Shown here in pieces: positions 1,717 through 32,305 of a stretch of 32,351 nt of DNA (positions are counted from its first letter, which is position 1; the number at the start of each line of letters is the position of its first letter). This stretch comes from Klebsormidium nitens. Its lineage: Eukaryota; Plantae; Klebsormidiophyceae. The stretch covers positions 1 through 32,351 of the forward strand of contig DF237746.1 in NCBI GenBank assembly GCA_000708835.1, written 5' to 3'. The notes under the pieces were generated by a model that was not told the origin of the DNA, made no database searches, and saw only the letters and a program-made list of their open reading frames with translations. The translations under genes and the position numbers were made by a program.

Positions 1717-4700
1717 ATGGCGAGCAAGCATGTCAACATCCTCGAGCGCCGCACAATGGAGCTGCGCGCGCGGGACGAGGCGCTCGCAAACGCGCTCAAG
1801 GCGTTCAGCGAGCGCAGCAAGGAGCACGGCGGCGCCGATGCGGCCGACCGGCCGGGAAGCTCGGGAAAGAACAAGGCGCGGCTGAAAGTCGTGCGCGCAG
1901 TGGCGACGATAATGAAGCTCGCGAAAGTGCATGTCCAGGCAGACGTGGTGGCGCCCAAGCGGGACTCTGTGGAATCGAAAAAGCACTCCAAGCGGAGAGC
2001 AACGATCGATCCGGGGAGCGGTCACCCAGAGGGATCCCCGGAGAACTTGCCTGGGGGTGAAAGAAGGCCGAGTCACAAGCCGAACGGGCACAGCGAAAAG
2101 CTGACGGCTGTGCCGTCCTTTCGGAAGTTTGCTGCCAGCTCAGCGACCCGTGGATCAGGCCTCAAGGTCAGTGTTGCGCTTGGATCCGCCAGGGGGATGC
2201 TTATATGCAGCATAATGCAAGTTCCTGCTTTTGAAGCAACCAGCAATCCTCCGCTGTGAAATCTTCACCAATCTGCGTTCTGTTGATTGCATCATAGTCA
2301 CAGTGGTCACCAGTGGCTTCCTCCGTCCGTTGGGTTGCTTGCACGGAACAGATCAGAGAACTGTTCAAGGTGCAAATACGCTCGTACATTTGGTAGCCCC
2401 ACTTTGCTCGACGATCATTGCGGTGCTCGGCCCTTGCCAGACGAAGCAAGGATCAGACTTCAAACCATCACAAGGTTTCCTGCCCTGAATCGCCCAGAAT
2501 TTGTCCGTTTTATCAACCTTAGAAGTCCATCTTAGGGTCACCTGCGGATTCTCCTGCGGCCACCTCTACTACCTTTATTCCAGTCTTTCTTGAACGAGAT
2601 CTCATCGCTTCCGCGATTTAAGCCTCCCATTCCCTCCATTTGGTCAAAGGAGGAGAGAAAACACTAGTTGCAGGAAACATGAAGCATTTCATCTCGTTGC
2701 AGGATTCGTTGCGGGACCAGGTTCAACAAATGAGCCTCCAGGCGATGCGGCGGCTGTGCGAGACGCCGTTGGAGGAGCGCACGCCCGAGATCGTGGAGAA
2801 GATCTGTATCATGCTGCAGCAACTGACCCCACTCTTCAAGGACGTCACGCAGGGCGTGCTGGAGGAAGTGACGAAAGTCATGCGCGTGCAAGAGTACCAG
2901 GCATATACCAGCGGTGCGTAAATCTCAGTCTGCATTGCATTCTTTCAAGGTTTCGGGGCATTCAGGAAGCGACAAGAAGTCGGGTTCTACTCTCAGTCGA
3001 GGCTTTAGGGCGATCACGAGATGGTAGGGGCCATGTGCGTGCAGGGGTACCAGGCATACATCAGCGGTCCGGCGATCAGAAGTCTGCTTCCTCTACCCGG
3101 AATCCAGGTTTTGGGGTGTTCAGATTCATCGTCGGCTGTTTTCGGAAACCCACCCACAGAGAAAAAGGGTCATGCCGGATCAGAGTCTGATTGTGCAGCC
3201 GTCTAAGGTTGGGGCAAGTCGCAAGGTGACAAAAGTCGAGCGCGTGCAAGGGTACCAGGCATACACCAGCTAGTTTATGTTCCAATTCTGCTCTGGTTGA
3301 CTGGTCTCGGGCGGACAGAAAGTCACAGTTCTTGCTCTCCCTGGGTCGAGGCTTTGGGGCAACTGGAAATTGATAAGGGTCGTCCGCGGGCAGAAGCTCA
3401 AGGCCTACACTAGCGGTGCGCCGATGCGAGTTGGGTCTGCAAACGTTCTGGGGCATCGAGAAGCGGGGAATCTTCTCTGGAGGCCCTAGGCATAAGTGCT
3501 GTGTCTCTCGTCAAGTCACGTCAAGTATCAAGATTCAAGGACAGCCCGACTCACTCCGACCGAGTGCCGCTTTCGCGACACAGCACCACAAGCAGCCCTT
3601 CTAAGTTTCGTGTTCCTGACGAAAAAGCTCATGCAGATCAATCTCGTGGATCGTTTCTTTCAAGTTGCCAAACCCCGAGAGTTCACGGGAGTCAAAACTC
3701 CAACGGTTGACTCCCATACTAACAACGTTCTGTTTTATCACAGTGCACCATCAGAGCGAGCCGTCCACTGAGTTTTACATCATTCTTCGGGGAAAAGCGG
3801 AGGTTAAAATCGCAAACGGGAATCTGCTGAAGGCGGTCAACGTGCTCGCGCGGGGGGAGTATTTGTAAGTACCACCCACGGGAAGCAACTTGACCAGGAA
3901 GAAATCAGTGTTAAGCAAGCTTGGTCTGTGGTTGCTTCGAAGTTCCTTCTACCAAGAAAACTTGGTTCATTTCTGGTTCGATGCCTTTCAATCAATCGTG
4001 GATAAGGGCAAAACCTTTCTATGTTTTGTGGGGTTCAACCGACTGAAAGGAACTCACGATTGCAATCAATGTCAGTGCTCGGCGAAACTGCTCCTTACAT
4101 ATTGCTTTCAGAGTAAGTGCTTCTAAGAAGGCAGAGCTCGAGCTCTGAGCTGGTGACAGGCGTATTACGTTTGGGAGGCGATGAGAGAATCTTATGTGCG
4201 TTCACGTCTCCTTTGGAAGGTTCGGACAAACGTCGCCGTTTGTTGCTCTGCTCTCACACTACAGAGAGGTGCTATGTAGCTCAGCGCCTGTTCCAACGTC
4301 ACAAGTTGTTGGTCGAAAACGTTTTCACGTCGGAGTCTTTTGACGCGTTTCCAGCTTTGCACGCTGACCCACTTTTGGAACCGTGACTTCGCAAACGGCT
4401 GTCCTAGAAATTCTCCTTATTTCAACAGCTCGACCGTCCAAGAAGAATACAGCGAAATAACATTTTCGTCCTTCTAAGTCTAAGCATGGACTATCTTGCA
4501 GCGGTGAGATTGGACTTCTCAAGGGTACAAGACGATCAGCAACCGTCACTGCTCGGACGCGCATCGAGCTGCTCGTATTTGGGAAGGAAGACTTCGACAG
4601 ACTGTTCAGGGTCAGTCTGCGTTCCCTCTCGCCACTCTGGTTCTTACTTTGGCCGGATACGCAACGCGTACAAGCATTCAGAATAATGGAATCCTGAGAA

Positions 4701-12100: not shown

Positions 12101-15100
12101 ATGGCGGGAAGTGGGGGCCTCTGCCAAAGGTGGCACGCCCTGGTTGTAGTATTGCAGCTGTTCTTGTTGGGCCTCACTGTGGGAAGCAAAGGAGAGGGTG
12201 AGTGGACATCGGACATGAACAGGCTCAGAAGGCGTGTATGTCCGTATTGTACCAAGGGCATGATGAGCTGCTGCATGGAATGCAGCATGATATTTCTTGT
12301 CTCTTGCACATCACAAGGTGACAGCTCTGGTTTGCTCTGGGAGTCACGCAGGTTGCCTCATATTCTCAAACAGGTTCTCTTGTCTTTCCCTAGATCTGCA
12401 ATGGTGCGTGTACTCTGAACCTGGTCAGCAGCAGTGCGAGCTCCTGGCCACGGCTGCAGGTACATGGGGTGCTGGATCAGGGTTGCAATGGTGAGGAGAG
12501 TCTTACTGTCAACTTGCAACAACAAGCATGGCATTGCGAAGTATAGTTTCGATGGTTATGGATGATTGTGTAGGCGGAGTTATCCAAAATGACGCTTGCT
12601 TGAATGGTTAACAGAAGAGTTTTTGGTGCGTCTGGACGACCTTGAGTTGCAGTTGCTACATAGGATACAGATATAAGATTAAAAGGTGTGGATTCGTCTC
12701 TGTATCTTGATGAAGAGCAGATGTCACACATTGAGTTTGGGGCTCTGAAGGTTTTCCGTTATCGAAGTTGCGAATGTCTACCTAGTGTCAACACCTCTGG
12801 TTTCCCACCTCCTAGAAGATAATCAATGTTTTTCAAAGCAAGTGCATTTCCTGCTGTCCTTGTGGCCACTCAACAGAACGACAGCAAAACGTCTACTGCA
12901 TGTTTTCCTTACATCTGCTTGGCAGCAAACCTCCACTCGACAAACTCGTTTTAATTATGCAGTCGTCACATGCTGGACTTCGCTGCGTGCCTCGCCTCCA
13001 CCTCAGGGGGCAGTGTTGACCTCATGTTGGCGCCCCCTGGGCCCCTTCCGGAGCTGCCTAGGGGGCTGGCTCTGGTGGACATGCGTCATGGGGAGCCGCA
13101 CAGTTCAGGGGTTGTGCGCTTCGGTCCGAAGTATGCCTTGGTTGGGAACAAAGATATGTGCCAACAGAAGTTGGCACCAGGGTCTAAGGGAGAGGATCGC
13201 TTCAAACTCTGCCAAACAACCATGGACTGTCTGCAAGGGTCTGCTGGGGAGGCTGCATTTGTCAACCTCTCCATGCTGGAGGGCCTGGACAGTGACCTTG
13301 AAAGAGAACTCAGGTGAGTGCGATCGCGCTGCGAAGTTTGTTGGTGAGGGAATGACATTGGCTACTGGATGTCTTGACGCCTTGAAAATGTTGACACGCG
13401 TTCTTGACGAGGGAAATGCTGATTGACTGAACGAACAAATATCTGGAAACTTTGTATGAAACAATTGAGTTTGTAGATGTATGTAAAAAAGGTCGGAAAA
13501 ATAGGTTGCTCAGCACATGATTATCGGTGCCTTTAAGCATGCACATTTCACGAGCAGCTGCATATTTTACAAGTGACAACGTTCATCATTGGTGTAGAGC
13601 ATCCTTGATAATCAGCGACCTTCTCTGTATGACTCGCTTCTTGCAATCTGTGTTGAGAATTGCACACAATTACCTTCACAGTATGAATTGAAGCTTCACA
13701 ATGTGAATTGACAAGGAAAAGGTTCGCAACCTATTATTGGCTCCTGTGCAGATTGGTGTGTCCAGATTTGAGCTGTCAGCCAGTGCAAGGGAAGCCATGC
13801 TGGTAGGTTTACAGTGACCTAATGCTGGAAAAGAAGGTTTTCTTTTGCACATCGGGGCAAGGAGTTGCAGTGTGATATTAAGCAATTTGATCTCATGGCA
13901 GTATAGAGGCTGTCCTTGCTTATCATGCAGAACCATTTTTCTCTGTGACATCTCAGGGCATGCCTAAGCAACCATGTAATCATTGTCCTGCTTTTGAAAC
14001 CACTCTACTGTCATTTTTTATTTCAAACCTTCCAATCTGCTCCATTGAACTGCTGACAGGCACTGGCAAGCACCACCACGCACAGCATTAGTCCAGTCAG
14101 GATCTACGAAGGCCCTTCTATTGGGGACTTTGGCGCACGAGCTCGACAGATTAGAAGCAGCTTCTGCTTTCAAAAGGGCATCGGCAGGGGAAAGCGGAGG
14201 GAAAAGCACGCGCTGGAGGCCCATCCAAGAGATCCTCAATGTCGATTTTCCTGGAAAGGAATCTTCCCGACGGGGGCAAGCTGCAAGCCGGCGCTTGCTA
14301 CAGAGCCCAGACCCAAGCCCCACCAGTGATCCAGCCACACCCGGTCCCACAGCGGTTCCAACTACTGCTGCCCCAGACCCCACTCCTGCTCCCCCACCAC
14401 CGACTCCTGCCCCAACCACCCCAGTCCCTGCGACTACGGCCCCTTCCACCCCAACCCCTGTGACCCCAGCTCCTTTTACGTTCACTCCAGCCCCCTCAAC
14501 AACCACCTCAGCCCCCACTCCAGCACCTGTAGTCTCCACTCTGCCCCCCGCCACTCCAACTCCAACGACCCCTGCGCCTACGCAAGCACCGGCCACCCCC
14601 GCACCCACCAATCCTGCACCCGCTACACCACAACCCACTCCTGCACCCACAAACCCGCCCCCAACGCAACCCCCCCCGACGCAGCCCCCTCCAACTGCTG
14701 CCCCGACTGTTGCAGCCACTCCTGCACCGACGCTGCCCCCCCCGACTGCGGCCCCAAGCACCTCCCCCCCCACAAGTGCCCCCACTCAGGCACCTACCAC
14801 TCTGGCACCCACACCTGTACCGACGCCAGCCGCCACTACAGGTACACCACAAACGCTCCCCCCCACTGTTGCGCCCACTTTGGCTCCCACTGTTGCCGCC
14901 ACAGTTGCTCCCACAGTTGCGCCTCCTACTGCCGCCGCCACCCCCCTGCCCACACCCGCAGGTACGTTAGCTCCCCTCACGACGCCATCTCCGTCTCTTA
15001 CCCCCGCTAGCACCACTCCTGTTGTTACGGAAGCGCCGACGCCGGCCCCGACACTTGCGACCGTCCCCCCAGGTACGTCACAACCGCCCACCGTCACTCC

Positions 15101-18100
15101 CGCTCCCTCTCTTCCCAGTTCCGCACCCGTGACACTTGCGCCAGTAGCCACTCCCCCGGCAACGCTCGCCCCACCCATTGCAACAGGTACGTTGCCGCCC
15201 GCCACTCTCACCCCGTCTTCTACCCCAACCCTTATTTTAACGAGCTCCACGCCAATTCCGACAATACCGCAGGCGTCACAAGCCCCCCCCACAGGTACGT
15301 CCGCCACATCCGCTCCATTAGACCCCACTAGTTTTCCCACTTTGCCGAGTCCCACGCCTCTTGCTACCGTTCCTGTTTCAACCCCGCTCCCCACGGCGCT
15401 TGGGCCACCCATTGCGACAGGTACGTTGCCGCTCACCACTGTCACCCCGTCTGTTACATCAGCCTCTATTTTACCGACCCCAGTCTCGACAATAACGCAG
15501 GCGCCACAAGCCCCTCCCATAGGTACGTTCGTCACATCCGCTCCGTTGAATCCCACCAGTTTTCCCACTTTGCCGAGTACTGCACCTCTTGCTACCAGTA
15601 TTGTTTCAACCCCGATCCCCACGACGCTTGGGACACCCATTGCAACAGGTACGTTGCCGCTCACCACTGTCACCCCGTCTGTTACTTCAGCCCTTACTCT
15701 GCCAACGCCAATTCCAACAGTTACGCAGGCGCCACAGGCTTTCCCCACAGGTACGTCCGTCACATCCGCTCCGCTGAGTCCCACTACTTTTTCTACTTTG
15801 CCGAGTACTGCACCTCTTGCTACCAATCTTGTTCCAACCCCGCTCGCCACACCGCTTGGGCCACCCACCGCAACAGGTACGTCGCCGATCGCCACTGTCA
15901 CCCCGTCTGCTACTTCAGCCGTTGTTTTGCCTAGCTCCATGCCAGTTCCAACTGTCATTCAGGCGCCGCAGGGCCCCTCGACAGGTACGTCCGTCACGCC
16001 CAATCCCATGATTCTTCCCACTTTGCCGAATACCACACCTTTCGGTTCGAACAGTCCGCTTGTATCAACTCCGATTCCCACGACGCTTGGACCAGGTGGG
16101 TTTCCCTTTCCCACTACGCCTGCTCCTCCAGTCACCACCGTTGTGCCCACTCCGCCTGGCACGCCCGCTATTACGACCAGCCTTGCATCAAATATACCAG
16201 GGGGGTCCCCCTCAACCCCTACTCCCACTCCGCTCGTTCCCAATAACGAACCCGCTTTGATGAATATCACCCCGACTGCTACTGCCAGCCCTTTGTTGAC
16301 ACCCACATCTTCAGCAACCCAGCAAGGGATAGTGCAGGCCAACACGTCCCTTGTTCCTACCCTTGTCACTAACGTACCCACCTCGCCAAACAGCACGCTT
16401 TCGAGTGCCAGCCTGTTGCCAACGCCGATTTCTAATGCATCCCTGCCAGGTACGGTGTTACCAACCGCCTCTCTTGTGCCTCCTTTCACTGATTTGCCCA
16501 CCTTACCAATTGGCACGCTTAAGAAAACAGGGAGCCCATCAGTGACGCCCGCTCTCACAAGAGTGGGAGAAGGTACGCCCCAACTGGTTATCGCGCTCGC
16601 CCCTACTTCATTTACTAGCTTACCCACTCCGCCGAGCACTGCATCTCCTGGTAACACTAGCCCTAATCTGTCGACGACTGCTCCTGAGGCAACTGTGCCA
16701 AATATTTCCTTTTCCATCACCCCGCTGCCTACAACCACTCTTCCCACTTCGGCAGCCAACACCCCTCCTTCTACAGCTGCCCTTTCCCCGCTCATAATGC
16801 CGCAAACAAATGTGCCTCTGCCCGGCATGTCCATCGAACCTTCTGTGACCCCTGCTCTAAGCACAGGTCTTCCCACCGTATCAAACGGCTCAAACTCCCC
16901 CCTAGCCAGTTTGCCATCAAGCCCTTCTCCTTCGTCAATGCCACCAGGTGTTATCCTACCTCCTATCAATAACACAAGTGTCAATTCTTCCCTCTATAAC
17001 GCTCCACTGGCTGCAGCTACTTTTTCCCCCACTCCTGTCTCAGCGAGCGTGGTGCTTCCCCCCACTGTTAGCAACATGAGTGGCAGTCCTACTCTCCCTC
17101 TTTCTACACCAACACCCTCCAACAACACTTTGCCTGCTTTTTCGTCCACTCAACCCCAAGTAGGGACTCTGCAATCCAACACCTCATCTTTTATGAATAG
17201 CACAAGTCCATTCGTAAAAAGCACAGTGTCCCCAGTATCTTCAAGTCCAGTATCAGCACCAGGTATGATTATTTTTGTTTGAGCACTTAAAAAAGTCGTT
17301 TCCTGTGCCTATGGAAAACCCCCAGTGAAACAGGGACACTGATTTTGTGACACTATTTGTCCTTGGCTGTCCAGACTTGTCCATAACTACCATTCCCCCT
17401 GTAGGTCGCATTGAATGCTGCTCTCTCCTTAAGATCCAGTCCTTCTATTTTCCCAAGTTGAGGCTCTATTTATGTTTGTTGCATATAGTCGGCAGTGCGT
17501 GTCACCTTTCTTTTCTTACACGTTATTTGGGGCTGGAGACGATTCTTGGGGGCCTCTGCAATGGTGAGCGCCATTTGCAGAGCATTCATTTCTTTGGATC
17601 TTCACCTTTTATCACTTTATCTTGACTTCTTTTGCTGTCCAGGTAAGTCTTCTTTCTTTCCTGCTCACTTAGTCCTTCCCCGGTAACCATCATTCCTTGA
17701 GGACATGCTTCGACCTCCAATCTTTCCTTTCATATTTTTAACTCATTTGTCCTGCTTGCCCCTGGGATGTGGTGTGAATGTACCTTTTTCTACATTCTGC
17801 TTAAATGCTTCAGAGCCCTCTCTGTTTGGGGCTCTAGTTTACATGAATTTCAGAGTCAATTGACATAAAGAAACTGTAACAAAGTCTCCGGTTGCTGCTG
17901 TGATTTGCATGGCTTTGGTGCTGGTAAAGAGAAGGGCAAGGTCAGCTTCAGCTGCTGTTAGCATGTATGTCAAACATGAGCAAGATTCGAATCCCTAATT
18001 GAAGAAGGATTCCATCGCCAGCAGCTGCTGGATAAGTCATGCAGTTGAGTGCAAAAATTGTTTGCCTTGTCTTGGTCTCCTTAACCCCTAAACTTAACCA

Positions 18101-21100: not shown

Positions 21101-24100
21101 ATGATAGGATCGTTGAACTCAACACCGCTGTGGCAGTGATGGCGCCCATGTGAGCAGCAAGTCCTTGCTGTAGCATGCTTTTTATATTTTTGGCCTAGAA
21201 CGGGATACATCGCCCTCAGCTTGCCCGAAGCCGCCAAGGTACTCTCACAAGCCACTTGCTTCTCTTTTGCTCCTAATTCACTCGCTTTTCTCCCTTGCCT
21301 GCAGCCCACGTGTTCTCGGTCGGTTCGCTCGGACACGAGACCGAGTCCAGCTATCCCACGGTGTCCGGATCGGCGCGGGAGTTCACGTTCCAGGAGATCG
21401 TGGAGGCGACCGACAACTTCAACCCGAACCACATCTTGGGAGAGGGCGGCTTTGGACAGGTCTTCAGCGGAAAGCTGCCCGACGGGAAGTCGATTGCGGT
21501 CAAACGGCTGACCAGAGACGGGACGCAGGTGAGAGCCACAGTTTCAGACGCCTTTGGAGTGGGTCACGAAGGAGGTCCTTGCATTTCTGGAACTCGGTGA
21601 GACTGCTTTGAGAAGCAGCAGCCTTGATTGATCATTTTGGACACAGAATGGACTTCGTGGTCCCGCTAGGATCCTCCTTGTGCATGCGTGTCTCGTATGT
21701 GAAGGAGCCATCGAAGTTAAGGCCGTTGTTGTATTCCAGGGTGGGACCACGAGACGTTTTCCATGCTTCAGTGAAGCTTGACCGCCCTTGTAGGCCCCCA
21801 CTCAGCAGACGGCATAGAAATAAAGCCCCAAGCAGGGCTTGCCGAGGTTGGATCCATCGTCGTGCACAGTCAGCAACGCATACAAACGCTTATAAAGCAA
21901 GTTGGCTGACGTCAGGTCTTTTTTGGTGCAGGGCACGAAGGAGTTCATCTCGGAGGTTGACCTGCTGAGCCATCTGCATCACAAGCATTTGGTGAAGCTC
22001 GTGGGGTACCATGCCAGCGCGCGTGGCCGCCTCCTCATTTACGACCTCATTCCCAACGGCAGCGTCGAGTCACACCTGCACGGTAAGTAGGCACCCGAAG
22101 GCGGTTTGAGACATCACGTTGGTTGGTCAGTTTCCTTCTTTTGCAGTGCCATCCCGTCTATGTTTCTGTGGATTTAGATACCGGTTGTCGTGGCTCCCCG
22201 GTGGCAGCATCGAGTCCCACCTGCATGGTAAGCAGGCACCCAATTGTGATCTAAGACGAATTGCTTTGATTGGTTCAGTTTCCTCTTTCTGCAGTGCCCC
22301 CCAGTTATACTTCCGTGGTTGTTGAATACTGGTATCTTTGCTCCCCAACGGCAGCGTTGAGTCGCACATGCATGGCAAGCAGGCACCCCAATGCATCTTG
22401 AGATTTTTCATATTGGTCGGTCCGGTTTCCTGGTTACGTAGTTGCACCACATCCGTCAGTACTGGACGCCCTGGTTGAGTTCCTTTGTTGGAAGTTATGT
22501 GATTTTGGACGTGCTGCGGACGTTTGCTACGGATGTTTTGCAAAACATCCGCGTTTTCCATCTTGGTTGCACCCTGGTGCTTTCAGTCCATGTTTCAGAG
22601 CGTCTTTTGTTCATTTCCAAGGGGTTATAGGAGAGGCAGCAGACAACACGAACATTGTGAAGAAAGAACTCCAGGATTTTGTTGCACGATGTAGCAGAAC
22701 GCCCACTTTGAACTAGGTTCAATATTGCCAGTCAAAAGTTATAGCAGCTAAAAGGCTGTTTCCTGGCTTCTCTTCAGGAATTGATAACTACGACAAACCG
22801 CTCGACTGGGAGACCCGCGTGAAGATTGCGCTGGGTGCCGCGCGGGGGCTGGTGTATCTGCACGAGGACTCGAACCCTCGCATCATCCACCGCGACTTTA
22901 AGGCGAGCAACATTCTGCTGGACAACGACTACACGGCCAAGGTGTCCGACTTTGGACTGGCCAAGGCGGCGCCTGACGGGGAGATGGAACACATCTCGAC
23001 GAGGGTCATGGGCACCTTTGGGTACGCCCCGTTGCTATCTTGGGCTGCTCGTGTTCATGTATCGGCTAAGCACAGAACGCTTATGTTTGCGCTTAAGTTT
23101 GAGTTTGTGGCCGATGTTTCATTGGTTTCTCTGTGCTTCCTTGCGAGAATGCTTATTCCACATCGACGCTTTCGTATATTCTACAGCTCAAAGCCGAACT
23201 ACTTTGTCATTCGTTTACCTCGATCGACGGCTCTGGCTTGCAACATCAACGTAGCTTGCCGCCAGCAAAATTCGCGAGTATCTCACGAGCCAAGAAACGG
23301 TGACCGACAGCCAGAGCGTTTCTGTCTCGTTGCGATTTCCCTATCTTACTCGATGCTCTTTGGAGTGGCCAACGAGGCTGTGCATACCTGGGGAAAAGAA
23401 AGAACCATAGAAAGTCACATTTCCAATATGAAGTCGCTTCTTGCGATGCTTGCCACCAAGGCCCTCAGCGGATCCCCTTCAGTTGGACGTCTGTCTCTTG
23501 AAAGTGCACCTCTTCTTGTTTCCTTTTGTCTTGCAAGCGCGTGATCAAGAGAAGGCGTGACAGGTGGCACAGCAAATGTTTTGGAGAGCTGAATCTCTAC
23601 CGGACTTCTGGTTTGCAGGTACGTTGCCCCAGAGTACGCTATGACGGGGCACCTGCTCGTCAAGAGTGACGTGTACAGCTACGGAGTTGTGCTTCTGGAG
23701 CTGCTCTCAGGCCGCAAGCCGGTGGACATGGATCAGCCCCCGGGCCAGGAGAATCTCGTGACCTGGGTGAGTGCTCGTGGCTTCACCGACAAGTTGCTTC
23801 TCTCGTCAACCACACCCTCATGTGCCACCGTTTCAGTCACTGGGACGACAACCGGAGGGGAACTCCCCTCTCATCCCGCCCTGTCATCCTGTTAGGCTCG
23901 GCGGCTTAAACCTCTTGGGACACCAATCCGGAACACTACTTCGGTCCACTCTTGTCAGAGGCAGCGTCGGACAGAGCATTGACAAAGCTCAAGACTCTGC
24001 CTTTTTGCGCTCAACAATCGCCACAACACCTTTCAACCCCTCGACACTCCCCCCACAACGCTCTCTCAGCCTTCTCGACCTCGCTCATGGCCTCTCAAGC

Positions 24101-26268: not shown

Positions 26269-26910
26269 GCAGTGTGGTCAAGTCTGCTAGTAGAGTGCCA
26301 AATCCAAGGCCGTCAGCATATCCTAGAGTCTAGAGTAGAGGCTTTGTGATGGATCACATGGAGCGGCGGCGGGCATTCTCATTGCCCATCACCGTCTGTA
26401 AATTATGTCACTTTGCTTGACGGTGTGCGGGAGTCGTTTGCTACCTTGCAGCAACCAAGGATGCCTCTTTTGCTGCAAGCCGAAAGTTGTCGCATGACAT
26501 AAAAGTCGGGTTACATGCATCTTGATTGCATGGGAGGATTGCATGCTGTCATGCCAGATCATGTCGCATGCGATTCGTGTCTGAATTAGTAGTTAAATCA
26601 AAAATTGGATAATAAATGAGGACATGCCGGTAGCATAGGCTATGACTCAGGCCCTAGGCTAGAACTTCAGACAGGTGTGACTTGTGAAAGAATGAAGCTT
26701 GTGCTTCATTCTTTCTTCTGTTCTATCCAAGGCTGTGGTAGAGACGGTGTAATAAGGAACTCTTGACAGCTGAACGATGGCCTAAAGTAAGTCTCATGTG
26801 CAAGCGCGGAGCGCGCGCGAGTAGTGCTGTGTATACCTATCACATTCATGGACCTTCTGTGATGCGCGGAATGTGGCGCAGAACAATTAGAGAAGAAAAA
26901 ATCAGGGTTC

Positions 26911-27702
26911 TGTGAGTGTGTCGTGGGAGTGAGAGTAGGCTCGTCCAGTGAGGGACGAGGCGCGCAGAGAGCGCGGAGTGTTCGGGCTGTTTAAAGAGCA
27001 GCCCGCTGTACGGTCTGTGAGACTGGGGCTGAGGTGGCTGTTTCTAGGTGGTAGAGTCTGCCGTTACCAGTTTGGCGCAAGGGCAATAGGCCACTTGCTC
27101 CTGAGGTGCTTCAGGAGGCAGGCCACTCGGTCTTATCTAAGGCTAGGGGTGGTCTCGCTGATCGGTATTTGTGGGGGGCTGCGCATGCGTAAAGGGCTTC
27201 GGCCTTTTGCTCAGCGGCGGGAGACCGTGCCTGCTGGGCTCCGGCACTGAGCTTGATCATTCAAGAAGTGCCGGTTGCGTGCGTTAAGCCTTACGGAGTT
27301 CCCCCGTTGCCGTGACTCGTNNNNNNNNNNNNNNNNNNNNNNNNNNNNNNNNNNNNNNNNNNNNNNNNNNNNNNNNNNNNNNNNNNNNNNNNNNNNNNNN
27401 NNNNNNNNNNNNNNNNNNNNNNNNNNNNNNNNNNNNNNNNNNNNNNNNNNNNNNNNNNNNNNNNNNNNNNNNNNNNNNNNNNNNNNNNNNNNNNNNNNNN
27501 NNNNNNNNNNNNNNNNNNNNNNNNNNNNNNNNNNNNNNNNNNNNNNNNNNNNNNNNNNNNNNNNNNNNNNNNNNNNNNNNNNNNNNNNNNNNNNNNNNNN
27601 NNNNNNNNNNNNNNNNNNNNNNNNNNNNNNNNNNNNNNNNNNNNNNNNNNNNNNNNNNNNNNNNNTTACGGAGTTCCCCCGTTGCCGTGACCTGGTGGCA
27701 CA
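26911..27702 (+). repeat. Putative 5' LTR (TGTG...CACA), interrupted by an assembly gap
   Basis: Starts with TGTGAG (26911) or TGTGTC (26917) and ends with GGCACA (27697-27702), shortly before a TGG-starting PBS-like site. No second LTR is available to confirm the boundaries. Confidence 0.5.
27321..27665. other. Assembly gap (345 N) whose flanks share a 26-bp identical sequence
   Basis: TTACGGAGTTCCCCCGTTGCCGTGAC at 27291-27316 and at 27666-27691. Confidence 0.95.
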
Positions 27703-27710
27703 AGTAGTGG

Positions 27711-27720
27711 TGGTGACAGC
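27711..27720 (+). promoter_or_regulatory. Putative primer-binding site (TGGTGACAGC)
   Basis: Begins with TGG (complement of tRNA CCA), 8 nt after the putative LTR end. Complementary to ...GCTGTCACCA, which I recall as a plant tRNA-Leu 3' end (unverified). Confidence 0.45.
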
Positions 27721-27722
27721 GC

Positions 27723-28420
27723 ATGGACCGTCAAGAAGCTATAGCTTGGAGCTCATTCCAGCAGAAGTGGGAAGCGTTCGCGGCAGAGTGGGTAGGTCTG
27801 CCAGGAGAGAAGTTGTGGGTGAACTTCTTGGCGAACAATCAGGAAGAGGCCGAGCTACTGGGGTTTGTAGTGGACTTGGCCGATCACTGGCCGATGGCGC
27901 AGAGCGGGTGCTTGACAGACTGTGTCATTTGTGACGCACCGGAGAGTGACGGAGCGTTTGCTGGCTTTGAAGCCGTAGACGGGTCAGAGCCGCTGCGGTT
28001 GTGGGAGGCGGGGCAGGCGCGGAGACATCCCTGCCATTGGTGCTGGGTTGAGGGTGCGGAGGAGATCAGGGAGAGCAGGCGTGCGGAAGAAGCGGGTGAG
28101 GACTTGAGTGCCCTGTTCAGGGAAGGGGGCATCGAGGACTTGGACTAGAACTGGCGGGGGAACGGCCCGGCACTCAGCTGCTGGACCTGCCAAGGGACCT
28201 GCTGGAGCTGATTGCTGAGAAAGCAGCGGTTGGGGCCCACCGCCGTTGGGTGTCGCTGTGGCACGTCTGCAGGCGACTGAGGTGGCTGGTTCTGTTGGGA
28301 GAAGACCCGCCGGAGGAGGTGGTAAGCGAAGGACAGGCGACCTGGGTGCGGTGGCCTGGGTGCGGAGGCAAAGCGATAGGGTTTAGGAGGGCGAGTCCTT
28401 CTTATGCCAGTGGAGACTAG
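27723..28420 (+). pseudogene. Extra upstream ORF (ORF0) of the retrotransposon: 141-aa frame with CxxC-x33-CxxC (27723-28148), continuing in the -1 frame into an F-box-like motif (28178-28294; stop 28418-28420)
   Basis: ATG at 27723, CVIC at 27921-27932, CHWC at 28032-28043. The -1 frame is open from ~28100 to 28420 and reads ELAGERPGTQLLDLPRDLLELIAEKAAVGAHRRWVSLWHVCRRLRWLVLLGEDPPEE. The ORF track missed it because it has no start codon. Confidence 0.6.
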
Positions 28421-28577
28421 GTCCCAGCTGGCTGCTCGCTACCGGGAGGTGGTGGAAGCGGTGTCGTAGAGTACGGAGCTGGTGCGAGCGGAGAGCGAGG
28501 GGTCGGTTGGGGAGGAGAACTCAGCGGAGTCCGAGCAAGCTAGCCAAAGGGGCTGGTGGGAGGAGGAAGAGACGGAG

Positions 28578-31500
28578 ATGGCGTCTGGCGCTGGTCCAGA
28601 GGGGAGGCAAAGGTTTTCGGGAAAGAAAGGTGATGGGCTGACTATCAAGCAGTTCGAGTTGATGACCAAGGGGAGCCTGGCGGACAAGTTCAAAAAGTTG
28701 CAGAAAGATGTGGGGAACGCGGTTGAGGGGCCGGAGTTTAACGGGAAGTACTGCATCTACCTGGGTGAGTTTTTGGACAACCCGGCGAAGTTGGCGCACG
28801 AGAGGGAGTACGAGGCGCATTGTAGGACGTCGGACCCTGTGGGGGCGCTGCTGACATCCTTGAAGCGGCACTTCGAGGACCACAAGGAGGGGAAGGCCCA
28901 GGAGTGGGTCCAGTTCAAGAGGGAGCCGGGAGAGGAGTTGCCGTCGCTGTTGTTCAGGCTGCAGGGACTCGCACTGGACTTGGAGAAGCCAGAGGGGGAC
29001 CAGGAGTTGGTCACAAAGTTCGTCACTAGTCTTGACAGGCGGCTGGCAGAACAAACTAGCTCGCAGGCATTGGCGGCAACCAAGGAGGCGGGAGGAGCGT
29101 ACACGCTGGATGAGGCGTACGAGGCCGCGTTGCGGGTGTCTGCCATCAACGCTCGCCTGAAGATAGCTAGGGAGTTGGCTCCCAGGGTGGCGGACGCGAG
29201 CAGGCTCAGGTGGAGTAACAAGCCGGCTGCGGCGCACGCGGCGACCGTCCCTGCGCCGGTGCAGCTGGTGGCGGCAGCTCCGGCCGCGCCGTCAGGGGGC
29301 TCCGGAGCGTGCCACAACTGCGGTGAGTTGGGACACTACCGGGGTTCGTGCCCACACCCGCGGAGGAACAGCTCCGGGGGGAGAGGCGCGGGCGCAGGCG
29401 GTGGGGGGCGCGGAGCTGGCAGGTCCAGGGCGTGTTATGTGTGCGGCGACACAGGGCACTTGGCGGCCCAGTGTGCGAAACGGGTGGTGCCGGTTGCAGC
29501 GGCAGCGCCGCGGCCCCAGGCAACTCAGAGCGTCACCAGTGCAGAGTTCGCGGAGTTCCAGGCCTGGAAGGCGACGGCGCAGGCGGCCGCGGCGGTTGGA
29601 GCAGGCGAGGAGGAGGATGAGGGCTCGGATTGGGATGATCAGGAGTACGAGTTGGGAGCGGTGGCGCTCCCACTCGTGGGGCCTGGGGTGGTCATGGCGG
29701 CGGCGGGCACGAAGGAAGGGGCAGTCAAAGCCAGAGCGACCAGGGCCGCCCAGAACGGGGGAAAGGGCAAAGGGGGTCAGGCACAGGGCACGGCCGCAGC
29801 GGGTGGCGGAGGGACGGGGGTTGGGACGGCGCAAATCGCAGGCCCGGTAAACCTTGCGGCCGTGGAAGCGTTGAAGGCAAGGCGGGATAAAGCAGCTGCG
29901 AAGGAGCGTTTGGTCAAACTTCCTGATCATGGCCGCCAGGTGGCGCCCCAGGGACTTAACAGATTGCCCAAGGGCTTTGCTGTGGGGAACGAGGGTGGAG
30001 GAGCTGACGGGGTTGCAGGGGTTTCGCGTGCGTATAGACCAGGAGCAGAATTGCTTGTGCAACCTGTGGTGACCGCCGAGAACACGGCCGCCGCGAGCGC
30101 TGTCGGCAGAACAGGGGCGGGGGCCCAGCAGCCGGGCATAGCTGGGGCGAACTCCGCTGTCTTCGGTGAAGTACGCCTCCCTGTTGCGCTGTTCTTGGAC
30201 CTCGCGGAGAGGGCGGGTCTGGACCTGGCCACGGTGGCGGCACTGACGCGGGGTAGCGCGACGTCAGGAGTTGGGCTTCCGGTGCGCAAAGGCCCAGCAG
30301 TACGAAGCCTCTCCCCGATCGCGCTAAGAGCCCAGAGGGCAAGGGATGGACAAATTGCTGCCAGCGCAGCGCAGGCGCCGGGGGCACAGGTGCGCGGCGC
30401 AGAGGTGGTCAAGGGCAGCGGGAAACACGGTGGCAGCGTGGTGGGACTGGCAGCACAGACGGTGCCAGCTGCTGGCGCCGCGCAGGCAGCTGAGGTCTTG
30501 GTCGAGGAGAAGCAGGCCAGGGAGGAAGTTGCGTTTGCGGAAGCAGTCGCGTGGGCGGACTTGCAGGAGCAGGAAGATCAGCCGGAGAGCTCCGCGATGG
30601 GGGCGGCGCGGGCGGAGGCTAGAATGGCCAGGGGGCGCGAAGGGCCGCGGGGTGACGCTGAATTGGCGCGTACCTTGGCAGCAGAAGAACGCGCGGCAGC
30701 AGAGGCGGTGGATGCGGAGCGCACGCTTGCCGTGAGCAGAGACGCGCGCGTGGCCAGGGAGTTACTGGAGCAGGAGGCACGCGATCAGGGGTTGGATCAG
30801 GAGGCCGCCATGTGCGCGCAGGGTGCGGGGGCGGCACGTGATTGTGAGGCAACGGGGACGCGCAAAGGGAAGGCAAAAGTGGACGCCCCTCTGATGCAGG
30901 CGATGGCATGGGAGAAAAAGCTCGGTGCCGGAGCTTGGAAGGGGTCGCAGCAGTTGGCAGAGGTGGTGGTGCAGCCCAAGGAGGACGTGGTGGTGGCGGC
31001 CGCCACGCGGGCGCAGGCGATGGCATGTTTCGCTGAGGGGAGACCGCTCGTCAGCCCGGCAGAGCGGGAGCAAGTAGAAGGGGTCCCTGACTGGGTTGAC
31101 AACACCAACAAGGTGGTCAAAGTGATGACTTCCAAGGGGTGGTGGGCCCCAGAGCGGGTGTTGTTGGACGGCGGGAGCTTCTACTCTATGGCGGGGGCAC
31201 GGCTCAAGGCGCGGTTGGGGTTGACAGAGGCAGACATGGATGTCGGCGGACACCGCGTACAGACCGCGATGGGGAAGGTGGAGGTGCTCTCGGGGGGCCT
31301 CACCAAACAACCTGTCCCAATAGTGTTGAACCCAGGAACCCAGGAGGAGTTGTGCGTGCTTGAAAAGCTCGCGTTCACGGAGTCAACGGGGTACGATCTC
31401 CTGATCGGGACCAGGGCTGCTTACCCGTCAGGCCTGTCGGTTGACAGATGGACAGAGCAGGGGGTGTACCGGGTTAACTGGCAGACCGAGGGGAACAAGG

Positions 31501-31628
31501 TGGGCAGGCTCCCCTTGAAACTCCACCAGGGGAAACCGGGGGGCTGGGCACAAGTGACAAGACGCGGAGGAAAGCGTCCAAGCAAGGGCGTAGCAGGCGT
31601 TGCCCTCGCTTGCTGCCTCACTCAATGA
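28578..31628 (+). CDS. gag: Gag-protease polyprotein (retrotransposon Gag core, two CCHC zinc knuckles, long Ala/Gly-rich spacer, aspartic protease)
   Basis: Gag core FKREPGEELPSLLFRLQGL...LVTKFVTSLD. Knuckles CHNCGELGHYRGSC (29310-29351) and CYVCGDTGHLAAQC (29433-29474). Protease VLLDGGSFYS (Asp at 31167) and GYDLLIG (31389-31409). Likely ATG at 28578 (GAGATGG); the frame is open from 28470. Confidence 0.9.
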   Translation: MASGAGPEGRQRFSGKKGDGLTIKQFELMTKGSLADKFKKLQKDVGNAVEGPEFNGKYCIYLGEFLDNPAKLAHEREYEAHCRTSDPVGALLTSLKRHFEDHKEGKAQEWVQFKREPGEELPSLLFRLQGLALDLEKPEGDQELVTKFVTSLDRRLAEQTSSQALAATKEAGGAYTLDEAYEAALRVSAINARLKIARELAPRVADASRLRWSNKPAAAHAATVPAPVQLVAAAPAAPSGGSGACHNCGELGHYRGSCPHPRRNSSGGRGAGAGGGGRGAGRSRACYVCGDTGHLAAQCAKRVVPVAAAAPRPQATQSVTSAEFAEFQAWKATAQAAAAVGAGEEEDEGSDWDDQEYELGAVALPLVGPGVVMAAAGTKEGAVKARATRAAQNGGKGKGGQAQGTAAAGGGGTGVGTAQIAGPVNLAAVEALKARRDKAAAKERLVKLPDHGRQVAPQGLNRLPKGFAVGNEGGGADGVAGVSRAYRPGAELLVQPVVTAENTAAASAVGRTGAGAQQPGIAGANSAVFGEVRLPVALFLDLAERAGLDLATVAALTRGSATSGVGLPVRKGPAVRSLSPIALRAQRARDGQIAASAAQAPGAQVRGAEVVKGSGKHGGSVVGLAAQTVPAAGAAQAAEVLVEEKQAREEVAFAEAVAWADLQEQEDQPESSAMGAARAEARMARGREGPRGDAELARTLAAEERAAAEAVDAERTLAVSRDARVARELLEQEARDQGLDQEAAMCAQGAGAARDCEATGTRKGKAKVDAPLMQAMAWEKKLGAGAWKGSQQLAEVVVQPKEDVVVAAATRAQAMACFAEGRPLVSPAEREQVEGVPDWVDNTNKVVKVMTSKGWWAPERVLLDGGSFYSMAGARLKARLGLTEADMDVGGHRVQTAMGKVEVLSGGLTKQPVPIVLNPGTQEELCVLEKLAFTESTGYDLLIGTRAAYPSGLSVDRWTEQGVYRVNWQTEGNKVGRLPLKLHQGKPGGWAQVTRRGGKRPSKGVAGVALACCLTQ

Positions 31629-32305
31629 AAGGACGGGCTGGGCCGCCTGCCAGCGTGGTTGGGAGAGCGCACGCAAGAGGAAAGGTTAGCGGCCCGGCCA
31701 GGGGAGGGGGCGCCAGCACGAAGGGTGCTGCCGCAGGAGGAACGCGTTGGGAGGCGGCTCGCGCGGAGGTGGCCAAGGGGGCCACGATTGGATGTCGCGG
31801 CTGAGGCCGCAAAAGCTGTGAGGGCAGCGGTTGGCGTGCCTCGGCGCAAGGTGAGGGGGCCACAAAGGGTCACCCTTCCCCAGCTGAACGGCTGCCAGCC
31901 CCTAGATCAAACTCTAGTGCCAGCACTGCCGTCGGACAGGCCTCTCAGGGTGTTGGAATTCTTTGCCGGGGTCGGGTCTGCCACGCAGGCGCTGGCGCGG
32001 CTGGGATACGAGCTAGGGGAAGTTGTTGCGTGCGAGGCGCGGGGGGCTGCCAGGGTGGTGCACGCCCACTCCCTGACGGAGCTAGCCAGGGAGTTCCCGG
32101 GGACAGTGTCCAGCAGAGCGGGGGCTCAGCTTCACCACCGGTTTCCCCAGGACATCCGGTTGGTGACAAGGCAAGCGCTCCAGGAGTTGGGGCCAATATA
32201 TATATAGACTTAGTGGTGGCAGGGTGGCCCTGCCAGGGGAACAGCGCCGCGGGGAACGGCCGCGGGTTGGATGATCACCGCAGTGGGCTCTTCACAGAGC
32301 TCATG
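31629..32305 (+). pseudogene. Disrupted DNMT3-like C5 DNA cytosine methyltransferase domain, in frame with Gag-protease
   Basis: Motif I LRVLEFFAGVGS (FxGxG, ~31944-31979), motif II VVACEA, motif III PQDIRLV, motif IV DLVVAGWPCQ (catalytic PC, after an 8-nt TA insertion at 32199-32206), motif V GLDDHRSGLF. QDIRLVTRQALQELGPIDLVVAGWPC parallels DNMT3A [26 protein letters not shown]. Motif VI (ENV) is not present. Confidence 0.9.

Follow-up and report, generated by a model that had tools for sequence, protein, structure and literature searches.

The 3' quarter of the window, by which is meant the whole stretch of 32,351 nucleotides of Klebsormidium nitens DNA that was analysed (contig DF237746.1), is a single retrotransposon copy on the plus strand. 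Between its first reading frame, ORF0, and its gag gene lies a short frame without a start codon, and the best explanation of this frame, to which we give slightly more belief than doubt, is a separate F-box-like cistron of a Gypsy-order, Dnmt3-carrying LTR retrotransposon. Attention was drawn to the frame by a sequence-only reading of the same DNA, and its basic description is accurate. The frame (position mod 3 = 2) is preceded by a TGA at 28097-28099, is open from 28100, contains no ATG before the gag ATG and lies at -1 relative to ORF0. The peptide reported from it, LLDLPRDLLELI...VCRRLRWLV, is reproduced by translation of 28148-28420, which ends in the TAG at 28418-28420. The 38-residue motif within it spans 28178-28291, and the end given earlier as 28294 was one codon too far, which is trivial. 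The methyltransferase attributed to the element is likewise present as a C5 DNA methyltransferase domain (PF00145), and gag of the window copy contains two CCHC zinc knuckles by Pfam. The layout of the copy is given in Table 1.

Table 1. Layout of the retrotransposon copy at the 3' end of the window (positions are those of the window)
Feature	Position	Strand	Basis or remark
5' repeat and leader of the element	26677..27722	+	blastn likeness to about 700-860 nt upstream of ORF0 in L004, L005, L006, L007 and L012
ORF0, 141 aa, family unknown	27723..28148	+	16 homologues, 52-67% identity
Conserved CTG, proposed non-AUG start of the F-box-like cistron	28151..28153	+	A/G at -3, G at +4
F-box-like cistron, 90 codons to TAG 28418-28420	28148..28420	+	frame open from 28100, without ATG
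F-box-like core LLDLP...I...WHVCRRLRWL...GED, predicted SKP1-contacting part	28178..28306	+	invariant residues, dN/dS, complex model
Variable C-terminal tail of the F-box-like protein	28307..28417	+	overlaps the first gag AUG
gag and protease reading frame	28404..31628	+	first AUG (MPVETR) 28404; second AUG (MASGAG) 28578
Dnmt3-type C5 cytosine methyltransferase domain, same element	31848..32305	+	PF00145, E = 2.4e-6; window stops within the domain

The window copy is degraded. An in-frame TAG (28467-28469) lies between the two gag AUGs, and the match of the methyltransferase region to the DNMT ORF of a related copy, L005, shifts frame near 32204-32267 (tblastn, two frames). The leader contains an assembly gap of 345 N (27321-27665) with the same 26 nt on both sides (27291-27316 and 27666-27691), and probably little if any real sequence is missing there. 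Repeats of another kind were observed elsewhere in the window. Positions 15148-16024 consist of tandem units of about 228 nt within a proline-rich ORF of 1053 codons (14121-17282), each unit containing the splice-donor-like GGTACGT, and positions 22052-22403 hold three direct repeats of about 146 nt, each with a splice-donor-like GGTAAG.

Related copies were gathered by fetching the contigs of protein homologues of ORF0 and of the F-box frame, and were compared one by one. This yielded 12 distinct DNA copies (the window, L001, L002, L004-L007, L011, L012, L015, L016 and L018), which are related to one another, so that counts across them are non-independent. The order ORF0, F-box frame, gag was found in 12/12 copies, no two of which share a genomic site. 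The loci resemble one another up to about 700-860 nt upstream of ORF0, and the flanks beyond this point are unrelated by blastn; the host flanks differ by locus and include a histidine-kinase-like gene in L004 and G6PD in L006. The assignment of the frame to the LTR element and not to host DNA is thus borne out by 12 copies with unrelated flanks. Its occurrence in the same element as a DNMT, also claimed from the sequence alone, was seen directly in two further copies. In L005 the full order by Pfam is ORF0, F-box frame, gag, DNMT, RT-RNaseH, integrase and PHD, and in L016 a DNMT and RVT_1 lie downstream of the F-box frame. The pol region of L005 ends in a PHD finger (PF00628; L005:13058-13834), at the place where chromoviruses have a chromodomain. 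Metagenome contigs scanned with the ORF0 alignment yielded 187 pattern matches, none of them confirmed.

De Mendoza et al. (2018; PMC5890265) have described KnitGypsy-Dnmt3 from Klebsormidium nitens, a Gypsy-order element with an intronless Dnmt3-type methyltransferase in its polyprotein and with DIRS-like repeats. The present copies resemble it in the domain order of L005 and in the succession of gag and DNMT in the window, and gag, protease, Dnmt3, RT-RNaseH and integrase were all found. From these sequence features we infer that the element belongs to the KnitGypsy-Dnmt3 family. In L005 the 5' repeat is partly inverted with respect to the 3' copy (3712-4192 against 14214-14523), and a piece of 109 nt occurs twice, at 14103 and at 14535, with an offset of 432 nt. 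This repeat layout, seen in incomplete copies, is consistent with the DIRS-like arrangement reported for KnitGypsy-Dnmt3. Neither an F-box nor an upstream ORF0 nor a PHD finger is mentioned in the text of PMC5890265.

Comparison of the copies indicates that the F-box-like frame codes for a protein and is strongly conserved; it would form a small cistron of its own, 81-90 codons long. It runs open to nearly the same end in 11/12 copies, and in the remaining one, L012, it is cut at codon 55. In all copies compared it begins where ORF0 stops and ends 7-14 nt past the gag ATG. A dN/dS test on the family copies, which the sequence-only reading had suggested, revealed purifying selection, with a ratio of 0.095 in the F-box core (pN 0.13 and pS 0.65 between copies, synonymous sites being near saturation) and values of 1.07 and 2.70 for the other two frames of the same nucleotides. 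The whole F-box-like ORF gave 0.14, and the tail, in subfamily B, 0.26 (other frames 1.1-1.3). Corresponding values were 0.157 for ORF0 (other frames 1.2-1.3) and 0.146 for the N-terminus of gag (other frames 1.2-1.4), so that the F-box core is more constrained than either ORF0 or the start of gag. The alignment also contains synonymous replacements that take several steps, such as Leu CTG/TTA and Arg CGA/AGG. It is hardly credible, in the light of these comparisons, that the frame is no gene at all and represents a chance open frame or a cis-acting RNA or DNA signal in the leader. Such an interpretation can draw on the missing ATG, by which the frame is uncallable for gene callers that accept ATG only, and on the RNA data, which provided no evidence for it: the stretch was in no listed RNA run, and contigs from four runs that carry the same species label match gag only (28748-29076, about 80% identity, no joints). 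Against it stand the low in-frame dN/dS at saturating synonymous divergence with off-frame controls above 1, the frame kept open in 11 of the 12 copies, and the failure to find a conserved RNA structure (for the region 3' of the CUG, RNAalifold predicted a fold of -7.5 kcal/mol that covariation did not support). The frame-specific dN/dS and the multi-step synonymous changes effectively exclude both chance and a purely nucleic-acid function. Because selection acts on the amino-acid sequence, the frame must be translated in active lineages. ORF calling based on ATG misses a gene that is more constrained than gag.

How a frame without an ATG is expressed was approached through its position behind ORF0. 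The sequence-only reading had proposed that one slip would fuse the two frames and that other copies might carry ORF0 and the F-box as one intact ORF. Under that proposal the F-box frame would be a C-terminal extension of ORF0 reached by a -1 slip, or part of one ORF in intact copies, and ORF0 would be the substrate-binding part of one F-box protein. The geometry gives the proposal some appeal, since the F-box frame is at -1 to ORF0 in 9/10 copies examined and starts exactly at the end of ORF0, and in the window its opening reaches 16 codons upstream. The upstream opening in L004, L006 and L007, however, is just 1, 3 and 4 codons, with TGA codons up to the ORF0 stop, and the overlap varies over 1-61 codons with no conserved X XXY YYZ site. 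The run AGGGAAGGGGG named as the place of slipping is present in the window, but it is not conserved in the other copies, and the run GGGAAGGGGG is specific to the window. L006 and L018 have both frames in the same register, still split by a stop. None of the 16 ORF0 homologues (0/16) is fused to the F-box, although the length window used would have permitted a fused protein. With an upstream frame that is too short, no slippery heptamer and no fused homologue, fusion by one slip did not hold up, and we consider this account of the frame, including one intact ORF in other copies, very improbable. A mini-intron joining ORF0 to the F-box frame (GT 28096 ... AG 28120) was also rejected, being 25 nt long, of a phase that does not fit and with a non-conserved donor. 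The GT of a GTGAG directly 3' of the CTG is not conserved either.

The alternative is a start of its own. A CTG in strong context sits 2 nt past the ORF0 stop codon and is found in register in 10/12 copies, whereas other conserved Leu columns use CTG in only 2-8/12 copies. The degraded L016 has TTG at this position. In L018 (1492-1503) the CTG is kept, but a 4-nt insertion (CATG) sets an ATG exactly at the proposed start; the same insertion brings the F-box frame into register with ORF0, with the ORF0 stop still between them. The ORF0 AUG itself is in weak context, with a pyrimidine (T/C) at -3 always, the first gag AUG (28404) is weak and the second (28578) strong, so that the starts in order are a weak ORF0 AUG, a strong CUG, and a weak and a strong gag AUG. 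From the ORF0 ATG to the gag ATG (about 667 nt) no extra ATG occurs in 4/7 copies, one occurs in 2 and three in the degraded L007. About 10 would be expected in the stretch from ORF0 to gag (P <= 0.003, with the span extended to the MASGAG ATG and the gag ATG counted), and a comparable stretch of gag holds 2-13. Out-of-frame ATGs within ORF0 number 0 against 3-5 expected from codon shuffles, and degraded copies have gained some; inside the F-box ORF alone, AUG depletion was not significant. An AUG-poor stretch of about 670 nt around a conserved CUG suggests leaky scanning or reinitiation, and the sequence features looked for in leaky scanning are all present, namely a long stretch with few AUGs, a first AUG in weak context and a start in good context downstream of it. 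It is plausible, though not quite probable, that the F-box-like cistron starts at this conserved, strong-context CUG just past the ORF0 stop. Ribosomes would get to the CUG by passing over the weak ORF0 AUG in leaky scanning or, equally possibly, by reinitiation after the adjoining ORF0 stop, and those passing the CUG would continue to the gag AUGs. Rice tungro bacilliform virus, which is also reverse-transcribing, has its first ORFs in a long AUG-poor stretch with one non-AUG start, and scanning ribosomes thereby reach the downstream ORFs. In comparison with this virus, leaky scanning in the present element is proposed from sequence features and reinitiation would serve equally well. As a retrotransposon whose cistrons may be translated by leaky scanning with initiation at a CUG, the element is a candidate for such a case among eukaryotes.

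By its motif the product of the cistron is F-box-like. The pattern LLDLPxDxLxxI ... WHVCRRLRWL is invariant in the family and follows the order of the F-box motif (about 45 residues), and the invariant core residues are L11, L12, L14, P15, D17, L19, I22, A23, A26, W38, H39, C41, R42, R43, W46, L47, E52 and D53. In the window translated in all six frames, a loose F-box regular expression matched a single time, compared with 0.003 matches per composition-matched shuffle. The spacing from LP to VC is 24 residues, which is 3 residues longer than in Skp2. The same spacing of 24 occurs in P0029, an unnamed protein of 76 aa (NCBI/ENA) that came closest of the non-family sequences among 5.8 billion proteins. 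P0029 aligns to the F-box-like frame over 39 gapless columns, shares the LLDLP..I ... VCRRLR spacing and has sub-threshold Pfam matches to F-box-like models (E = 0.02-0.03). In the ESM Atlas the ten best family-bearing neighbours of the frame are all F-box or F-box-like, the top named cluster scoring 0.93; the same test on ORF0 gave no coherent family.

Searches with profiles were negative. A scan with the Pfam F-box and F-box-like HMMs, which the sequence-only reading had put forward as a check, left the window copy unmatched at E <= 10 (PF00646, PF12937 and PF13013). Among the family members the sole match was F-box-like_2 in 1/11, sub-threshold at E = 0.14, and Pfam on the window copy plus 17 family members gave nothing else besides. 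A family profile found no F-box protein among PDB sequences, only noise (best Zuotin, E = 0.37), and among 1.84 billion representative proteins it found the family itself and the unrelated repeat protein P0021 only. Bona fide F-box ORFs were sought in the fetched loci for a reference profile, and none was found there. By these searches the product did not fall into a Pfam F-box family.

The AF2 monomer has low confidence (pLDDT 61) and consists of two long helices (16-29 and 32-50) plus a hairpin, as against the three-helix F-box fold. Foldseek and VIA-align searches with this low-confidence model gave no significant fold match, FBXO31 appearing only at E = 3.3. Modelling of a complex with SKP1, another of the checks proposed at the outset, gave a positive outcome. 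The partner was located by scanning viral contigs for the conserved Skp1 motif and comes from a giant-virus bin, not from the host (L013:1378-1905; Pfam Skp1, E = 1e-29, plus Skp1_POZ). Two giant-virus metagenome bins contain full-length canonical SKP1 genes with Pfam Skp1 and Skp1_POZ domains (L013:1378-1908 and, on the minus strand, L014:4364-4957). With this giant-virus SKP1, residues 7-61 of the F-box-like protein were docked in the model with an ipSAE of 0.78 (runs 0.80, 0.77 and 0.78) compared with 0.34 for the best of 3 controls, that is, above the controls by +0.44; the partner had a pLDDT of at least 64, and agreement of the contacts was 78% or higher. In calibration of the complex tool the mark was reached by 51/78 solved complexes and by 2/108 mismatched pairs. 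The modelled interface comprises residues 8-15, 18, 21-28, 35-37, 39-42 and 45 on the F-box-like side and residues 85-89 and 111-170 of SKP1, which is the C-terminal Skp1 domain with the canonical F-box-binding surface. The closest modelled pairs involve L14, L18 and I22. The passing result may stem from the model's memory of solved F-box-SKP1 complexes, and as such it speaks for likeness and not for binding.

The F-box claim thus came out divided, with the motif, the ESM neighbours and the modelled SKP1 docking in its favour and the HMM, profile and fold searches against it. In a contrary interpretation the product is a small, conserved accessory protein that leaves SKP1 unbound, such as a helical hairpin working with Gag, with ORF0 or in translational control, its likeness to an F-box being convergent or coincidental. 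This would agree with the negative outcome of every F-box HMM and fold test, with the low-confidence monomer of two helices and a hairpin, with the lack of a substrate domain, and with the invariant residues, of which 10/18 lie at the modelled interface against about 8 expected, showing no clear enrichment. It does not account for the coherent F-box identity of the ESM neighbours, for P0029, which bridges to F-box-like models, or for modelled docking that beats the controls by +0.44 on the canonical surface, and we regard it as unlikely but deserving of serious weight. A BC-box-type adaptor for Elongin C in place of an F-box is a further, highly improbable reading. The invariant S-L-W-H-V-C-R-R-L resembles the SOCS/VHL pattern S/T-L-x3-C-x3-hydrophobic, and Elongin C and SKP1 have a common fold, which counts in its favour. 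However, the residue four past the cysteine is an invariant Arg and not a hydrophobic one, the upstream LLDLP..L..I is a hallmark of the F-box, and no Cul-box LPxP follows downstream; in addition, plants and their algal relatives are not known to have CUL2 or CUL5. Overall, the F-box-like product is probably a minimal, divergent F-box-like module, which would bind host SKP1 through its LP...I and WHVCRR helices.

After the core the polypeptide has a tail of only 30-40 residues and no substrate-binding domain. A 14-nt indel separates subfamily A (the window and L002) from subfamily B, and because of this indel the tails of the two subfamilies are unrelated in sequence. With a tail so short and so variable between subfamilies, the F-box-like protein alone cannot be a classical substrate receptor. 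Having no substrate domain of its own, it would either need a partner (ORF0, Gag or a host protein) with which it would act in aiming SCF, or it would tie up and sequester SKP1; partner-dependent SCF targeting or SKP1 sequestration is suggested here weakly. The sequence-only reading had suggested that the adaptor may remove a host silencing factor, a role for which the protein has no conserved substrate-binding domain of its own. ORF0 has conserved cysteines in the arrangement C-x3-C-x2-C ... C-x2-C and an N-terminal helical part that is modelled with confidence, and it had no match in Pfam, ESM Atlas or fold searches. It may bind zinc and act as a partner of the F-box-like protein.

The most far-reaching form of the proposal is that the LTR family makes its own CUG-started minimal F-box protein, which would recruit host SKP1/SCF so that a host factor restraining the element is destroyed or disabled, alongside Dnmt3 and the PHD finger. 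Taken as a whole this is quite unlikely. If it were true, the element would carry a transposon-borne module for hijacking ubiquitin, which could be compared with viral suppressors of silencing, for instance polerovirus P0. If SKP1 binding is true, the family would carry three tools of chromatin and proteostasis, namely Dnmt3, a PHD finger and an SCF hook, and would offer a tractable model for the manipulation of host control by a transposon in a close algal relative of land plants.

Both F-box mimics of parasites (viruses and bacteria) and extra ORFs of LTR elements have been described before. Polerovirus P0, nanovirus Clink and the F-box mimics of poxviruses and bacteria are small, have a minimal or divergent F-box that is often missed by HMMs, and engage host SKP1. 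The present case differs from these in that the carrier is an LTR retrotransposon, that the protein comprises little beyond the F-box and that SKP1 binding is modelled only. Additional ORFs of LTR retrotransposons have been reported as conserved extras beyond gag-pol that are under selection (PMC7264820, PMC5408684); the term 'F-box' is absent from both papers, and the F-box-like ORF differs from the ORFs described there in lying upstream of gag and in having no AUG. A literature search found no retrotransposon-encoded F-box protein, and none under selection inside an LTR retrotransposon. The nearest case was a telomeric non-LTR transposon of Drosophila auraria/triauraria that carries fragments of the F-box gene CG12520 (PMC13534243). 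That transposon is a non-LTR element with captured fragments of a recognisable host gene, whereas the element described here carries a complete mini-ORF that is under selection and has no detectable host parent.
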